From positions 62,001 to 126,000 of IMG/VR virus record IMGVR_UViG_3300046536_000256: a stretch of 64,000 bases of DNA; one strand, given 5' to 3'. The translations under genes were made by a program, and so were the position numbers. Each line of letters starts with the position of its first letter. Positions within the stretch are counted from its first letter, which is position 1. Under the pieces are notes generated by a model that was not told the origin of the DNA, ran no database searches, and was given only the letters and a program-made list of their open reading frames with translations. Shown here piece by piece: positions 50,803 to 59,070 of this stretch.

Positions 50803-51324
50803 CTATTCAGGAGTTTCGGTTTCTGGTTCTTTCGGTTCGGCGTAGTAGAACACGTAGGTGTCCCATTCCTTTTCCTCACGCACATTCAAGATGAGCTTTC
50901 CTGGATTAGGGTTTGGGAAGTTGGTAGGGAGGTCCAGTTTGTCTCTGGCCACGTACAGGGCCGACACGATGGACGCATGAGGAACGACCTCTTCTTTGTG
51001 GTGAGTCAAGATGCGGGCTTTCCACATTACCCACTCTTTGCGAACCACGTTGTTGCTGAACGGCATGGTGAACTCTGGCTCTGGTGGTACTTCCTCAGAC
51101 GCCAGATCTTCGTTGGATTCGAAGTCCTCTTTCAGTGTCAACAGGGTTTCGTCCGCAGCCGCCTCGATGACCTCACGGAAGCTCTCGAATTCTTTACCCG
51201 TTTCCGGATGACACTTAGGCGCCGACATACCGTGTTTGCAGGCAACCTTTGCCCAACGCGGTAAAGCCAAGAAGCTGCGGTCTAGACGATCAATCAACTT
51301 ACTACGTTCTTCAGGGGACATCAT
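50803..51324 (-). CDS. Hypothetical protein
   Basis: 173-aa ORF coupled to the upstream gene. Confidence 0.7.
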   Translation of the reverse strand: MMSPEERSKLIDRLDRSFLALPRWAKVACKHGMSAPKCHPETGKEFESFREVIEAAADETLLTLKEDFESNEDLASEEVPPEPEFTMPFSNNVVRKEWVMWKARILTHHKEEVVPHASIVSALYVARDKLDLPTNFPNPNPGKLILNVREEKEWDTYVFYYAEPKEPETETPE

Positions 51325-51830
51325 GCGGCTCCGTTTAGTTTCTCAGGTGGCAAAGACCACACGAGGTTGTCGGTCTCGAAGTGGGCCTTGTTGTTGTCTT
51401 TGTGGGTCACGATCAAGTCTTTAGGGTGACTCCCCTTCAGGCTCTCAGGGATCGGCACAAAGCCACAAGCAATTGCGCGGTGGATGGTCAGTGGTTCAGG
51501 CTTTCGTTGGATGTTCACCACGATGTGGGGGTACCCGCTGGAATCAAGACTCCACTCAACAAATTTTGGGTCAGTGGTATTGCGCATATTTACCACTCGG
51601 CCTTTGTTACTGATGAAGTAAAGGTAAGGGGCTACCTTCACAGCCGCTCCAGGTACTGTCAGAGCCGCTTCATGTCGCCAGTAGACCAAGGGGAGGAACA
51701 TCTCAAACGTATCGTCCTTAGCAAGCTTAGCCGCTAACCGATCGGCAATAATACCGACGTTGAAAGGGTACTCGAGTTCACGGTACGCTTTCATGTCATG
51801 AGTAGTCAGTGCAGTTTCTAGAAATTCCAT
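51321..51830 (-). CDS. Truncated/degenerate HNH endonuclease homolog (paralog of 55980..56921)
   Basis: Shares LEYPFN, FIS.KGRV, HRA.AC.FVP and HPKDL.V.H.D..K..F...NL.W, then ends. Confidence 0.75.
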   Translation of the reverse strand: MEFLETALTTHDMKAYRELEYPFNVGIIADRLAAKLAKDDTFEMFLPLVYWRHEAALTVPGAAVKVAPYLYFISNKGRVVNMRNTTDPKFVEWSLDSSGYPHIVVNIQRKPEPLTIHRAIACGFVPIPESLKGSHPKDLIVTHKDNNKAHFETDNLVWSLPPEKLNGAA

Positions 51831-53648: not shown

Positions 53649-55961
53649 CTACTGGAGTGCGCAGTTAGAGTCAATCACTTTGAAGGTCTTCTTCTTGGGT
53701 TCGAAGGCGACCTCGCGTTTGCGGAAGTACTCTTTATGTTTCGGCTGGCTTATGCAAACGCCAAACACAAACCGCGGTGTAATCCGACCCCCGAATTCAT
53801 TCCGGTTAGCCAAATCACGTAAGCGGCCAATCATCTGCTTATTACGTTGAGTAGACCCCACCGTATGGAAACAAATGGTTGTTACCAGTCCAGGAATGTC
53901 CTTACCGGTACCGCAGCTGCCTGGCGTGGTTATAACGTGTTCGTGCCGTAGATATTTAGTTTTTCCTTCCTTATCCTTTGACTTGGTATCGTCGCCGGTA
54001 AAGGTCACGAAGTCACCCCCTGGATATTCCTTCTGGAACATCTCAAGCATCACCTCGCACATGCTGACCCTGGAGAAGAAGAAGAGGCACTTAGTGCCAG
54101 GCTCCCGGATGTCGAGGTAATAATCCTCGTACGCCTTCTTAGCCACGTCAAAGTAGAACTGCGTGACGGCACGGTTCCCCAGAATGCTCTGCTCCCAGGT
54201 TAGGTCATTGTAACTACCGAACTGCTGGGTCTTCAGGTTATACCGACGCGGGTTAATGTCGTAAAGGTACGCGACGATGTCGATATAGTTCTCAGGCTCC
54301 GGTTCCTTAAGCCGGATGTGGTATGGGAACATGACCTTGTAGATCTTGTTAATGAACGGGTCATCGGCAGCCAGTGTGGCGGACAGCACCAACACTTTGG
54401 CAAAGTTACCGTACATCAGCGAGATGCACACCTGGTGGATCGCCTCGTGCCCTTCGTCAATGATCCTGAGACCACACTCAAGGCTTTCGAAGATCTTGTC
54501 CAACCCAGGAGTCGACGGATCCTTCTTCTCGTTGCGCAGGTGTACGTCAATGCGCGTCATCGGCACAATGATTACTTTAGGGTCAACCGTCCCCTTCAGC
54601 ATCAACTCCTGCAACTTCTCGAGATCCTGTTCCCACACCAACACATCAGACGGTTGCAAGTCGATGATGTTACCCAACGCAGTGATCCAGGTGGTGATGT
54701 ACCGTGGCTGGATGGTGATCAGGGTTCGCTTGCCCATCAACAACATCGTCCGAAGACCCATGTAGGTGTTGTGCGTAACGAGGTAGTCCTTGATCACAAA
54801 GCAACGACTGTCATGCTCTACGGCAATGCAGGTGGTCTCAACCGGCCGGTCAATCTCAATGCGGTTAATCCGCAATGCCAGATCACGGTTCTCCTTATCC
54901 CATAATGCTTCCACCTTCTCTTGGACGGTGAACAAGACATCTGGGGTTCGGTGCGTGATAACAACCCAGTTATCGCTATCGGAGTAGTGGGCCTTTGCAA
55001 CACCCCCTATGCTCCACACCAGATCGCGAACCATCTTGGCGCTGGTGCCGTAGTCCGACTGATACAGAATCGACCCATCACCCTGTGGTTCACCTGTAGC
55101 GTCCAACAAACCACGCAGCAAGCCCATCCGCTGAGAGTGTGAGCCCTCAAGGTATTTCTCGCCGAGGAACCGATCTGTTTGACCGATCAGGTAGGGGTCG
55201 ACTATATCTGCGCGTTCCGGATTGCGTTCACTGGCGGTTAAAGGAATGCGCCAGACTTTATCCGCCGGACTGTCCACCAACTCCTGTGTAGTCATGACCT
55301 CCCAATCAGTTTGGCCATCTTGCCGAACTTCCCACTGGTGTTCAGGGCAAGCCACAGCTGTTCTGCCGTCCTCGAAGGTCAGCTTATATGTCGGTGTCAC
55401 CCCTTGAGGGAAAACCCCTGTGACGTACGTGTGGGAGCCGTCAGGAGCCATCACAAGGTCATTAACCTTGATCTGCCCGATTGGCTTCCAACCTTTAGCT
55501 GTTCTGACCGGTGTATCGTTGGCCAGTGCCTTACCAAACCCCGTTGATGCGTTGTTGACCTTAATGGGACCGGGGGCTAGTTGGTACTTGACCCATTCAT
55601 CCTGACCAGGGCGGGTGTTCTCGTAACCTTTGTTGAACTTAAAGGGTACGTTCTTACCGACCAACTCAGGTTCTTCAAGGAGGTCCACTCGGCTCTGGTT
55701 GTAACCCCGATACTGGGCGAACTCCAGAAACTCCTTCAAGAGACTCGAAGGGATACGGTACTCACTCTTATCGAAGTTAGACCGTGCGAATACATGGGTG
55801 ACCTTGTACGCTGTTCGGTTGGTGCCGGGTACAACTACTTTCCCTGTTTTGTACAGGTTAGCCCGACAGAAAGGCATAATGACTTGCGCGTAAAACTCTC
55901 CGTAGAACCCAAAGATTCGTAGGTAGTTATGGGCACGACTGATGGTCGCCACGTGTCTCAT
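53649..55961 (-). CDS. SF2 DEAH-box helicase (gp75-like) containing an intein; 516 aa after splicing
   Basis: Walker A STGFGK|T split by the intein; DEGH, LSAT, GTGKDIPGL and QMIGRLR motifs. Confidence 0.9.
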   Translation of the reverse strand: MRHVATISRAHNYLRIFGFYGEFYAQVIMPFCRANLYKTGKVVVPGTNRTAYKVTHVFARSNFDKSEYRIPSSLLKEFLEFAQYRGYNQSRVDLLEEPELVGKNVPFKFNKGYENTRPGQDEWVKYQLAPGPIKVNNASTGFGKALANDTPVRTAKGWKPIGQIKVNDLVMAPDGSHTYVTGVFPQGVTPTYKLTFEDGRTAVACPEHQWEVRQDGQTDWEVMTTQELVDSPADKVWRIPLTASERNPERADIVDPYLIGQTDRFLGEKYLEGSHSQRMGLLRGLLDATGEPQGDGSILYQSDYGTSAKMVRDLVWSIGGVAKAHYSDSDNWVVITHRTPDVLFTVQEKVEALWDKENRDLALRINRIEIDRPVETTCIAVEHDSRCFVIKDYLVTHNTYMGLRTMLLMGKRTLITIQPRYITTWITALGNIIDLQPSDVLVWEQDLEKLQELMLKGTVDPKVIIVPMTRIDVHLRNEKKDPSTPGLDKIFESLECGLRIIDEGHEAIHQVCISLMYGNFAKVLVLSATLAADDPFINKIYKVMFPYHIRLKEPEPENYIDIVAYLYDINPRRYNLKTQQFGSYNDLTWEQSILGNRAVTQFYFDVAKKAYEDYYLDIREPGTKCLFFFSRVSMCEVMLEMFQKEYPGGDFVTFTGDDTKSKDKEGKTKYLRHEHVITTPGSCGTGKDIPGLVTTICFHTVGSTQRNKQMIGRLRDLANRNEFGGRITPRFVFGVCISQPKHKEYFRKREVAFEPKKKTFKVIDSNCALQ
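54768..55529 (-). mobile_element. Class-3 intein (254 aa) with a degenerate LAGLIDADG remnant
   Basis: Starts ALANDTPV (Ala1) and ends YLVTHN|T; WCT triad (PEHQW, TTCIAV, VTHN); a single LLRGLLDATG motif. Confidence 0.9.
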
Positions 55962-55979
55962 GGTAACCCCCTAAATTTT

Positions 55980-56921
55980 TCAAAGCGGTATCCTTTCGAA
56001 GGTATACCCCTTATAGCTGGATCTCTTTTGAGCGATAACATCGGCCACTAACCTTCTGTGAAAGTTCATATTCTTTAATTCTTTTCGCCCAACTATAACT
56101 ATTTGCTCTCCAGTTTCTATATGTGTCGCAAGTAGCTTCGTTGTGACGTAAGGATTTATTGAAAAGAGGTTATTCTTGACCTCGTCATTTAAGCCATGGG
56201 GAAGGGTCTTTAGATCTTCCGGAGTCGCCATCGAGAACTGACAACTCTTATGTTTTCTAAAGCCGGATCCGACTGATCCAAATATTCTTGTGGCGTCGAA
56301 ACCGGAAGCTTCCGCCTCCTTCTTCCCACATATAACAAAGGAATAACCCTTAAACTCTCCAGCCACTACAACACCCTTAACAGGCTTCACTGCGTAATGG
56401 TCGATTCCTACCGGAGATATGAGTAGTCCTGTTTCTCTGGCGTGCCGCACGTTACCTTGTCCAGTAGTCCACTCTAGGTTGAACAAATCGAAATTACTTT
56501 TGACGCCGTCCATGTGGTTGACTTGGAGGTCTTTAGGATGACCTGGTATCTCGAGCGGGACAAATGAGCAGGCTAAGGCCCTATGGAGAGGAACCTTATT
56601 TCTCTGCTTCCCGTTATCTACCATCAGCCTAGGGTATTCCTCCATCATCCACGGTATCAAACGCCCGGTATGTTTATTCTTCTTAAAGGACCAGACTCTC
56701 CCCTTGCTGCTAATAAACATTTTGTACGGTTTAAGAACCTGTTTATCGATGTAGCCATAATAAACAAACGGGACCCACACTTCGTACTCTGGATCCAGTT
56801 CCAGCTTTGCTTTCAAAGCCTTATGCAAAATAGAAAGGTTAAACGGGTATTCAAGTGAGTAATATAGGTTTAAGTCTTGCTCACTTAGTAAATCCTCGGG
56901 TTTATTTGAACTTTCATTCAT
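55980..56921 (-). CDS. Free-standing HNH homing endonuclease
   Basis: LHRALA..F...VNHMDGVKSN...NLEW.T...NVRHA; AT-richer than its neighbours; ATG 56921 has an AAGGA SD (alternative ATG 56939). Confidence 0.9.
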   Translation of the reverse strand: MNESSNKPEDLLSEQDLNLYYSLEYPFNLSILHKALKAKLELDPEYEVWVPFVYYGYIDKQVLKPYKMFISSKGRVWSFKKNKHTGRLIPWMMEEYPRLMVDNGKQRNKVPLHRALACSFVPLEIPGHPKDLQVNHMDGVKSNFDLFNLEWTTGQGNVRHARETGLLISPVGIDHYAVKPVKGVVVAGEFKGYSFVICGKKEAEASGFDATRIFGSVGSGFRKHKSCQFSMATPEDLKTLPHGLNDEVKNNLFSINPYVTTKLLATHIETGEQIVIVGRKELKNMNFHRRLVADVIAQKRSSYKGYTFERIPL

Positions 56922-56932
56922 AACGGTATCCT

Positions 56933-56959
56933 TAACCATCTCGATTGTCGAGATGGTTA
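56933..56959 (-). promoter_or_regulatory. Perfect 12-bp hairpin over the HNH translation-initiation region
   Basis: taaccatctcga ttg tcgagatggtta. Confidence 0.8.
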
Positions 56960-56968
56960 TTTAGGGAG

Positions 56969-56995
56969 TTAGTAGATTCTGGCAACGTGGCGCAT
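56969..56995 (-). pseudogene. Relic 5' end of the SF2 helicase gene / uORF MRHVARIY*
   Basis: AGAGG-8nt-ATG CGC CAC GTT GCC AGA ATC TAC TAA; matches the helicase start MRHVATI at 6 of 7 residues. Confidence 0.8.
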
Positions 56996-57009
56996 TGTAG
57001 CAGCCTCTT

Positions 57010-57041
57010 AACAAAATAAACGAGAACCCCGAAGGGTTCCC
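57010..57041 (-). terminator. Terminator after the nvRNAP beta' gene
   Basis: gaaccc cgaa gggttc with minus-strand tail TTTATTTTG. Confidence 0.7.
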
Positions 57042-57054
57042 GCCATCGGGTGTG

Positions 57055-59070
57055 TTAAGACGCCCCCAACGCCCAAAACGCTTCGAGTACCGAACCTTGA
57101 CGGTCAGTGGTCATGAAGGTGCGCGGGTCGTTAAGAACGTTCTGTTGTTTCTCAAAGATCAACAACCCGCCTCCGCCCCGGCTGGTGATGCAGTTAATGA
57201 AGCTGGCGAAATACTTATCACCAGAACCATTCGCTAGGGCGTAGTTCAGATTGTTTGGATCTCTGGCCAAGCAGCAGTACAGCAAGGATTCGATGTGAAC
57301 CGCGTTGATACCCTTGATCTCTTGGTTAATGAGCGTCCAGAATTCTGATTGCACTTCGCCAAAGACTTTAGGAGTCACCACTTGGTTACGCCATGCGGTA
57401 TTGCGCTTGTTAAAGGTCATGAAGTTTTCCACACGAGCCCGGTGCATATCCAAATCTTCCCGAGTATAAGGAAGAGCGAACATCGGAGCCAATGTGTTCC
57501 AATCCGACAGGTCGATGGAGATGAAGCGTTTGTCCACCGTGTTCCAACCCTTGTCCAACACAAACTTCAAGAAGTCCAAGGAGAAACGAGCATTACGCGA
57601 CGACACCGAGGTGGTAGCCGAATGCTGCTGCGTAGTTTTGCCACCCATCATGATGTCTTCCACTTGGTAGCGGAAGGTAACGTCGGAGAAGTACGGGAGT
57701 TTATCCAGCCCAACGTCGTCCAATACATCGAGCGACTTCAGGTCGGACAGATCCTTAACAATAGACGACTTCAGAATCAACTCTGAACCCGGAACGCAGA
57801 TCTCAGCCTTCAGGAAGATTTCGTCCCCGTTGGTGTAGATGATATCCTTGTCCCGCATGTGAGGCACGAACTTCCGCGAGGTTGCGTTGCGGATGTAGTG
57901 CTTAGTACTGAGCATTTTCTGCCCCATCGGGTTACATAAGGTAGTGCCCGAGTACATTCCCACGTTTGCGTCTTTCATCATCATGACGTTAAACGGGATG
58001 GTCGACTTCATTTTCCCATAGCAACGGCCGCACGGCTGGCCTGGGTTGTGAGAGTTACAGAACGCTATGCTGCGGAAGGTGATGACGTCACCCGCCTTGA
58101 TCGTGTTCACGTTGCGTTGGTCAATCAGCACCGAGGACCCGTCAGCCATGATCATGTATTTGCCCATCAAGGACAAAGCCATTTCCATGTTCAGGATCTT
58201 CATTGGAACGCCTACAGTAGTGCCGCAGTCGTTCATGTGCAGGATGCTGGACAACGGCGCCGACAGCAAGTGAATCTTGCGGTGGAACCACTCAGCGTCC
58301 TTCAGACCTTTACCGTTGTTGATCAGCGATTTCCCCGAGGAGTTACGTTCCCCCAAGGAATCCGCTAAGTTGGTGATACCGTGTGCATACGGCACGTTAA
58401 CCGCATTCGGGAAGATGGTGTTGTTCAAGTCAAACACCGAACCACGAATGATCGTCGTCTGGAATGCTTGGTTGACGCTCACGCCACCGGTACGCGCCAG
58501 CAGAGCCATGGTGTTAGTGCTCAGACTTTCCGCTTCACGCAGGTAGGTGCTGAACTCTTTCTCGCCATCGTCAATGCTGACTTCATGCTTCAGGATCCGG
58601 TCACGGATATCCATGATCCCGATGTCTTCCATCAGCTCCGCCACCGACTCAGCCGTAGCTGAAATCACCGACGCCTCACTCATCACCACAATCATGTTGT
58701 TGAGTTTGGTTTGCCAGATGTGCACCTGACGCTTGATGCTGTCGGTTTCTACCGGGTCATCGATCTCCGGCATGACCTTTTCCAACACCCAGTTAACCGG
58801 GATCGCTAGAGTGTCATCATTGTAAACAACCTCCTTATGCTCCGGGTTGGTGTTGGATGGGATCAGTTCATCAATCGAGTACGGTACATCGTTGTACTTG
58901 CGGTGAACGATTAAGCCTTGCCAGGTCAACATCATGGCGAACAGGCAAGACAGTGTCTTCTTGCCTTCGTCGTCCACCACTTCCACTTGATGTCGGAAAC
59001 CACGACAGCGGATGATGTCTTCCTCAGGGAGGTTGGCCCACTCACGCAGGCTAATTTGCATGCAGCCCAT
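57055..59070 (-). CDS. Non-virion RNA polymerase beta'-like subunit, C-terminal part (gp74-like)
   Basis: NQ..Q..IIRG, bridge-helix-like L.DAEWFHRK, DCGT, C.....PCGRCYG and trigger-loop Q.MLSTKH. Confidence 0.9.
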   Translation of the reverse strand: MGCMQISLREWANLPEEDIIRCRGFRHQVEVVDDEGKKTLSCLFAMMLTWQGLIVHRKYNDVPYSIDELIPSNTNPEHKEVVYNDDTLAIPVNWVLEKVMPEIDDPVETDSIKRQVHIWQTKLNNMIVVMSEASVISATAESVAELMEDIGIMDIRDRILKHEVSIDDGEKEFSTYLREAESLSTNTMALLARTGGVSVNQAFQTTIIRGSVFDLNNTIFPNAVNVPYAHGITNLADSLGERNSSGKSLINNGKGLKDAEWFHRKIHLLSAPLSSILHMNDCGTTVGVPMKILNMEMALSLMGKYMIMADGSSVLIDQRNVNTIKAGDVITFRSIAFCNSHNPGQPCGRCYGKMKSTIPFNVMMMKDANVGMYSGTTLCNPMGQKMLSTKHYIRNATSRKFVPHMRDKDIIYTNGDEIFLKAEICVPGSELILKSSIVKDLSDLKSLDVLDDVGLDKLPYFSDVTFRYQVEDIMMGGKTTQQHSATTSVSSRNARFSLDFLKFVLDKGWNTVDKRFISIDLSDWNTLAPMFALPYTREDLDMHRARVENFMTFNKRNTAWRNQVVTPKVFGEVQSEFWTLINQEIKGINAVHIESLLYCCLARDPNNLNYALANGSGDKYFASFINCITSRGGGGLLIFEKQQNVLNDPRTFMTTDRQGSVLEAFWALGAS

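Follow-up and report, generated by a model that had tools for sequence, protein, structure and literature searches.

The window analyzed here is a 64,000-nt stretch of DNA, bases 62001–126000 of the 233,283-bp IMG/VR virus record IMGVR_UViG_3300046536_000256, which has terminal repeats. Its minus strand carries, in order, an RNA polymerase gene similar to phiKZ gp74, a terminator, a Shine-Dalgarno (SD) sequence, a short upstream open reading frame (uORF), a hairpin, an HNH endonuclease gene, a new SD and a helicase gene. An initial annotation of this DNA had proposed that a nuclease cassette entered the helicase coding sequence with a diverged copy of the gene start, leaving the old start behind as the uORF. 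Its coordinates for the first SD, the uORF, the HNH gene, the GGGGG motif and the helicase start were confirmed by reading the minus strand, on which all window features described below are located. The nearest named phages are the EL-like Pseudomonas jumbo phages (~46% helicase identity), and a megablast search of the locus against GenBank phages gave no match.

The upstream gene (57055–59070) encodes 671 residues. Its product is homologous to gp74 of phiKZ, which belongs to the non-virion multisubunit RNA polymerase (nvRNAP) as one of its subunits. The assignment is based on PHROG 3015 (RNA polymerase beta subunit, E = 3e-191), on BLASTP against gp74 (E = 1e-35) and on gene order, since the order gp71/73-gp74-gp75 is common to phiKZ and the window; in phiKZ, gp74 directly joins gp75. 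The gene had initially been labeled nvRNAP beta′. The nvRNAP part of this label holds; within the non-virion enzyme, gp74 is reported to be the beta′-like component (Yakunina et al. 2015). The helicase gene (53649–55961) encodes a 770-residue, SF2-type homologue of phiKZ gp75 (PHROG 16, DNA helicase, E = 2e-43; BLASTP against gp75, E = 3e-30), with a match in 732 phage records.

The RNA polymerase gene is followed by a terminator-like hairpin of 11 pairs with a T-run (57009–57044) and by the native helicase SD, AGAGG (57004–57008), which now serves the uORF (56969–56995). The uORF reads ATG CGC CAC GTT GCC AGA ATC TAC TAA and encodes MRHVARIY. Its first 21 nt (56995–56975) are a stranded native helicase start, whereas its stop codon is that of the cassette. 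The helicase itself starts downstream, at 55961, with ATG AGA CAC GTG GCG ACC ATC. The two starts had been reported to agree at 15 of 21 nt and 6 of 7 residues, with four of the six differences synonymous, and these counts are exact.

The inserted cassette spans ~1,043 nt (55932–56974) and consists of a stop patch, a stem-loop, the HNH gene, a new SD and a re-spelled copy of helicase codons 1–10. It is missing in all HNH-less relatives and is shared with a second HNH-bearing phage, L020 (see below). The stop patch, TAACTCCCTAAATAA (56957–56971), provides stops in two of the three frames and is identical in the window and L020. A perfect 11-bp stem-loop (56934–56958) lies directly 5′ of the HNH SD, with folding z-scores against shuffled sequences of −4.4 in the window and −3.8 in L020. 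The two alleles differ at four stem positions, which make up two compensatory pairs (one C-G changed to T-A, the other T-A to C-G). As all stem differences are compensatory, we conclude that the pairing is under selection. The cassette-borne helicase SD, GGGGG (55967–55971), is part of a GGGGGT motif that is conserved between the window and L020, even though their spacers agree at only 11 of 18 positions. The re-spelled codons 1–10 (55932–55961) encode MRHVATISRA.

The HNH reading frame is listed as 56939–55980, but the ATG at 56921 is the start conserved in L020, which gives a gene of 55980–56921 and a protein of 313 residues, preceded by the SD AAGGA (56933–56929). This protein was identified as an I-HmuI-like HNH homing endonuclease by Pfam HNH_3 (24.8 bits, exactly at the cut-off), PHROG 59 (HNH endonuclease, E = 5e-23) and PDB entry 1u3e (I-HmuI, E = 6e-6 over the HNH catalytic domain). 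A second, C-terminal stretch can be aligned to 1u3e as well, more weakly and without significance of its own. The HNH motif residues His136, Asn148, Asn157 and His160 are invariant in eight homologues. An imperfect direct repeat, AAGGATACCGTTATGAA and AAGGATACCGCTTTGAA (15/17), occurs at the start and stop of the HNH frame (56933–56917 and 55995–55979). It is probably due to chance, as it lacks conservation in L020 and falls within the range of shuffled sequences.

The locus in HNH-less relatives

Helicase-based searches of IMG/VR, of Joint Genome Institute (JGI) metagenomes and of a large protein collection identified ~11 distinct relatives without the HNH gene at this locus, with helicase identities of 55–85% (allele groups L001/2, L003/8/25, L004/5/7/24, L006/22, L026/27, L028 and L029). 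In every one of them, the RNA polymerase gene ends and, within ~60 nt, is succeeded by the terminator hairpin, an SD and the start codon (ATG) of the helicase. The letters of the terminator stem have changed among these phages, but the hairpin is kept. This is the arrangement that had been predicted for HNH-less phages, namely an RNA polymerase gene followed by a helicase with an SD and first codons of the uORF type, and it is seen in all ~11. The uORF and the re-spelled downstream start are absent from all of them.

Upstream of the ATG, the closest relatives, L001 and L002 (85%), agree with the window at 75 of 76 nt, and AGAGG stands unchanged ahead of the helicase ATG of L001. The first 16 nt of the L001 helicase, ATGCGCCACGTTGCCA, match the window uORF at every position (16/16; 19/21 overall). 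Since both the upstream region and the first nucleotides match an HNH-less helicase start, the uORF is the native helicase start, cut after approximately codon 7. Bare nucleotide similarity could not have validated this repeat, because in local nucleotide alignments of the HNH flanks the 21-nt repeat does not rise above shuffled sequences, even in known positives; it is the comparison with relatives that makes it real.

The re-spelled 30 nt at the functional start are identical to L001 at 20 positions; among the ten changes are CGC to AGA and TCG to AGT, and the peptide is the same. The codon for Ser8 is TCN in all HNH-less alleles. The combination AGT-CGT-GCC at codons 8–10 occurs in none of them, and four of the nine codons of the tract are found in no sampled HNH-less allele. 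As the synonymous codons 1–10 of the cassette join the resident frame at codon 11, the helicase protein is left unchanged. Overall, the HNH-bearing allele exceeds the HNH-less allele by 1,034 nt.

A second HNH-bearing allele

Among 5.8 billion clusters, the sole close relative of the HNH protein is P0002 (79% identity), which is encoded on L020, a 2.2-kb Logan contig. The architecture of L020 is the same as that of the window, with an RNA polymerase end, terminator, SD, uORF, stop patch, hairpin, HNH gene, GGGGGT and helicase. Its uORF reads ATG CGC CAT GTA GCT ACT ATC CAT TAA (MRHVATIH), and nt 1–16 of this frame are identical to the helicase start of HNH-less L006, which belongs to its own lineage, and not to the window. 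Its helicase starts with ATG AGA CAC GTT GCG ACC ATT AGT CGT GCC. Over the first 30 nt of the helicase, the window and L020 agree at 28 positions, compared to 17 for L020 and L006 and 17–20 for an HNH-bearing and any HNH-less allele. The tract clearly shared by the window and L020 ends at approximately nt 30. Helicase nt 31–41 are the same in all close relatives, and past approximately nt 42 each HNH-bearing allele follows its own lineage, apart from a shared TTT at codon 23. Thus, the HNH-less relatives and L020 both support the proposal of a nuclease cassette that sits in the helicase coding sequence together with a diverged gene start.

A maximum likelihood tree of 1.1 kb of flanking sequence (the RNA polymerase 3′ end and helicase nt 31–662) places L020 as sister to HNH-less L006 (support 100/99), apart from the window. 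A clade of the window and L020 was rejected by the approximately unbiased test (delta log likelihood 88, p = 0.0002), with the caveats that this clade was named after a first view of the trees and that the L020 flank is limited to 1.1 kb. The distribution of the HNH gene corresponds to two changes on the flank tree. Because the flanks of the two HNH-bearing phages are not sisters, we conclude that the cassette has moved relative to its background. The locus between the gp74 and gp75 homologues is polymorphic for presence and absence, with two HNH-bearing and ~11 HNH-less alleles and clean junctions. Exact-pattern scans of IMG/VR, with the re-spelled start and the HNH start as patterns, returned no further HNH-bearing allele, and a scan of JGI metagenomes returned HNH-less loci only.

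The HNH genes of the window and L020 are 76% identical in nucleotide sequence, with a synonymous divergence (dS) of ~1.4 and a ratio of nonsynonymous to synonymous divergence (dN/dS) of ~0.10. The low ratio reflects purifying selection, from which we conclude that the HNH gene is a working, maintained gene.

The HNH-bearing arrangement was recovered from the IMG/VR record, from the 135-kb Logan contig L021 and from a 77-kb contig at a depth of 932. A check for polymorphism among reads and contigs found the identical form in two runs, while a separate run yielded a diverged version (L020). Its presence in all of these sources shows that it is not an assembly artefact. In a third rhizosphere run (X3), low-depth contigs are 100% identical to both flanks, with nothing over 55223–56975. 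One of these contigs stops at 56976, within the uORF, and the HNH gene and the first 740 nt of the helicase are uncovered. The gap could come from thin, filtered coverage or from a strain that is near-identical but has another allele here, and proves nothing, since the contigs are of low depth and were filtered. If a near-identical HNH-less strain had a helicase beginning with ATGCGCCACGTTGCCAGAATC, codon 6 (AGA) of the uORF would be native and the insertion recent.

In the first ~140 codons of the window helicase, the fraction of conserved codons changed relative to L001 is ~0.5, compared to ~0.3 in the middle of the gene, and this 5′ part groups with L026/L028 and not with L001, so that the region is mosaic. 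A long co-conversion tract over codons 1–140 was considered, but the signal is noisy in this mosaic region and is not relied on here. In L020, the 5′ arm of the hairpin (L020 536–546), ATAACTACCTC, is an exact 11-nt copy of nt 32–42 of its own helicase, a match reached by 2–10 of 500 shuffled sequences. From this match, the stranded old start may, with some uncertainty, once have been longer than the present uORF; a search of the window for a longer remnant gave nothing significant.

Proposed mechanism and alternative explanations

The I-HmuI-like HNH gene is free-standing and lies inside the helicase coding sequence, ~21 nt past its original start. No intron or intein surrounds it (no Rfam search was made): the helicase restarts at the cassette SD and ATG with its full native N-terminus, the uORF terminates, and no exon junction is needed. 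The cassette re-supplies the start of the gene that it interrupts, and we consider it probable that it reached this position by homing. The HNH and helicase genes both lie behind the native upstream signals of the helicase, which they probably use, and would then be co-transcribed. During co-infection, an HNH-less allele would be nicked or cut by the nuclease, within helicase nt 1–30 or close by. Repair would copy the cassette, using as left homology the RNA polymerase 3′ end through helicase nt 21 and as right homology the helicase from approximately nt 31. These homologies fit the pattern of local and shared sequence seen in the window and in L020. The carrier genome would be immune, because its target site is split and the right half of the site is re-spelled. 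If repair went wrong in the recipient, a conserved replication gene would lose its start, which would penalize resistant alleles. The uORF and the hairpin may also tune the translation of the HNH gene. Cleavage of the HNH-less start and immunity by re-spelling are inferred steps of this scheme.

Several points weigh against this explanation for the phage, which comes from rhizosphere metagenomes. Only two HNH-bearing alleles are known, and their cassettes are old, as judged from their nucleotide identity and dS, so that nothing indicates recent homing. For free-standing nucleases of phages, the cut site is often distant from the place of insertion (PMC2988022). The helicase is assumed to be essential on the basis of its conservation. 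The re-spelling itself is not exceptional, as ~35% of conserved codons are synonymously changed between these phages. The seven of nine codons changed relative to L001 are modestly unusual against a background of 35–50% (p ~0.03–0.09), and the two cassettes do not share the re-spelled tract to an extent significantly above what the synonymous divergence of the HNH gene predicts (p = 0.07). The start had been described as recoded, and it is indeed re-spelled with the same peptide, but it could simply be a copy from a diverged donor; the data fit both this copying and a re-spelling for immunity.

An alternative explanation is that the insertion is real but the re-spelling has no function. A single illegitimate recombination would have captured the cassette from a diverged donor phage with an HNH gene just upstream of its helicase, the 30 nt would be a short co-conversion tract, and the HNH target would lie elsewhere or not exist. 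The high background of synonymous divergence, the elevated divergence and mosaic nature of the first ~140 helicase codons, and the non-significant conservation of the tract between cassettes are all as expected from such a capture. However, the spelling is that of no sampled HNH-less lineage, the shared tract breaks off near nt 30 with one further shared site (the TTT at codon 23) before the sequences become lineage-specific, the tract accompanies the HNH gene in two non-sister backgrounds, and the HNH gene is under purifying selection. On balance, we regard a functionless re-spelling as unlikely. Far less plausible is a cassette that is ancestral to this phage group and was lost from the HNH-less alleles. 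The two cassettes are about as diverged as their flanks, so that an old presence is conceivable, but the cassette is missing from all clades sampled, down to 55% helicase identity, and phiKZ gp74 runs straight into gp75. Moreover, a deletion between the two 21-nt copies would leave native nt 1–21 followed by AGTCGTGCC, the re-spelled nt 22–30, which is found in no HNH-less allele. As none has AGT CGT GCC, the HNH-less alleles are not deletion products of the HNH-bearing allele.

The short frame could also be primarily a regulatory leader for translation of the HNH gene or the helicase, and not a scar. It has exactly eight sense codons behind a strong SD in both alleles and is followed by the conserved hairpin. 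In the predicted folds of both alleles, the region of the HNH SD is base-paired to sequence at the uORF end or immediately past it, so that, in this model of two sequences, a ribosome terminating on the uORF could unmask the SD. Nuclease genes of T4 are likewise held down by hairpins and internal terminators (PMC2988022). In contrast, the uORF codons are those of the local native helicase start, and residues 6 and 8 of the peptide are not the same in the two alleles, in a comparison of two sequences only. A primarily regulatory role therefore seems somewhat doubtful to us, although it is compatible with insertion by homing and a re-supplied gene start.

A stronger form of the homing explanation is a natural "home-and-rescue" drive of a phage. 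In this case, the HNH nuclease would cut the helicase start and carry an immune, re-spelled start with its own ribosome-binding site, the element would spread wherever it is copied correctly, sloppy repair would kill the recipient, and the stranded start and the hairpin would control translation of the nuclease. We put this forward tentatively, as a serious possibility that we do not favor outright.

A probable helicase intein, other nuclease genes and known systems

The initial annotation described an insertion without intron or intein. This is correct for the HNH gene, but the helicase does contain a probable intein in its P-loop (54768–55529), which is unrelated to and separate from the HNH cassette. 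This in-frame insert of 254 residues (residues 145–398) splits the Walker A motif GFGKT between Lys and Thr. Its first residue is Ala, and it ends in VTHN, followed by the Thr. Homologues of ~511 residues cover only helicase residues 1–144 and 399–769, without the insert, whereas homologues of ~856 residues have LAGLIDADG domains at this position. The Pfam Hom_end_hint match of the insert is weak (E = 0.002, under the cut-off). The insert is kept in all close relatives and possibly belongs to an intein class without an N-terminal Cys/Ser.

The helicase gene call of the source record is 696 residues long, 74 codons short of the 770-residue frame, and by inspection begins at the TTG of codon 75. 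On the identical Logan contig L021, the call is 770 residues and the uORF is absent from the called genes. These differences are a warning for annotation, as the IMG helicase start is placed 74 codons late and the uORF is uncalled on near-identical L021.

Further genes of the HNH family are present nearby and in relatives. A second HNH paralogue (45% identity) lies outside the window (G000:C1:202509–203255; L018 1431–2372). It is a plain insertion of ~940 nt between convergent genes, where the L001 genome has 22 nt, and no gene end is duplicated there. In L011 (3485–5579), an HNH homologue (44%) is located between paralogous genes of 166 and 204 residues, which are 40% identical and both contain NFTTNPKKL. 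This case was rejected as an example of a carried gene end, since the gene family has two dispersed copies in the genome of the window; the L011 arrangement is probably ordinary tandem paralogy. A short HNH-family gene of 169 residues (PHROG 17657; 51321–51830) is found 2 kb downstream of the helicase and is also present in L026–L028. It adjoins a 173-residue frame (50803–51324) that is missing in L001 and L026 and present in L006. In phiKZ, the gp71–gp73 region (L037 13276–16596) has the reading frame PHIKZ072 inserted between two parts of an RNA polymerase subunit gene, upstream of gp74/gp75; PHIKZ072 is presumably an intron-borne HNH gene. Nucleases seem to have landed repeatedly in the gp71–gp75 block.

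The usual view, found again in a recent review of nucleus-forming phages, is that self-splicing introns let homing endonucleases enter conserved coding sequences while the host gene remains functional (PMC12908238). Inteins have this effect at the protein level. The closest precedent for the phage cassette is instead provided by the mobile open reading frames (mORFs) of fungal mitochondria. The mORFs in atp6 of Allomyces macrogynus (Paquin et al. 1994, as cited in PMC3630166) and in atp6, atp9, cox2 and nad3 of Glomus bring a foreign C-terminus that is diverged in DNA and conserved in protein; downstream of it, the native C-terminus persists as a leftover whose sequence agrees with the relative without the element (PMC3630166). 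Like these elements, the phage cassette is a free-standing endonuclease frame inside a conserved gene, with neither intron nor intein. It likewise brings a diverged gene end that leaves the protein nearly unchanged (20/30 for the tract), and the displaced remnant matches the element-free relative (16/16 and 19/21). The mORFs show that carrying a gene end is a workable strategy (PMC3630166). The phage cassette differs in that it replaces the 5′ end, with an I-HmuI-like HNH nuclease, whereas mORFs replace the 3′ end, use LAGLIDADG or GIY-YIG nucleases and reside in an organelle. Its duplicated segment is also short, only ~21–30 nt, unlike that of the fungal elements. As a consequence of replacing the 5′ end, the phage cassette must supply a ribosome-binding site and a start codon, and leaves a translatable uORF. 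Judged by its sequence anatomy, it works like an mORF, but it is not a member of the mORF lineages.

The T4-like nucleases SegF, SegG and MobE and the "genes-in-pieces" of Aeh1 nrdA and T4 gene 39/60 are also free-standing, polymorphic for presence and absence, located near or inside essential DNA-metabolism genes, and dependent on the expression signals of host genes (PMC2988022). They differ in that they occupy intergenic positions or break a gene up, so that it is made as two polypeptides which then reassemble (PMC2988022), whereas the phage cassette keeps the helicase whole. Re-supply of a gene start by the cassette is not among the T4 cases described in that work. I-HmuI of Bacillus phage SPO1, a nicking HNH enzyme (1u3e), matches the window protein in sequence across the HNH catalytic domain. 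However, the gene for I-HmuI lies within a group I intron and depends on splicing, while the window protein is ~140 residues longer and free-standing, and its activity is predicted only. PhiPA3 gp210, which targets the PhiKZ RNA polymerase gene, is likewise a homing endonuclease of a chimallivirus-type jumbo phage in a neighborhood of transcription and replication genes, with a possible role in competition between co-infecting phages; it is encoded in a self-splicing intron, unlike the window HNH gene (PMC11620839; PMC12908238). Finally, the "home-and-rescue" and "cleave-and-rescue" drives direct a nuclease to an essential gene and provide a re-spelled, immune copy, so that broken alleles are lost (PMC7968924, PMC6442612). 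These drives are engineered with Cas9 in insects. The likeness is one of logic only, and assumes that the HNH nuclease would cut the native start.

Our literature searches, whose coverage is incomplete, found no phage precedent for splicing-free invasion of a coding sequence by means of a carried gene end. Such invasion is known from fungal mitochondria, and we found no report of a 5′-end version in phages in the literature searched. In this locus, a phage nuclease enters a coding sequence with neither intron nor intein, and carries the piece of the gene that it displaces. The locus offers natural element-free control alleles as well as a second, independent HNH-bearing allele, and would be a cheap test system that requires one protein and three short DNA targets. 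It allows the study of target-site immunity through synonymous change and of a possible reuse of the uORF scar, and may be a natural counterpart of the engineered gene drives with a re-spelled rescue copy. If the arrangement is general, phage nucleases would have, in addition to introns and inteins, a third way into coding sequences, namely to carry a spare gene end.

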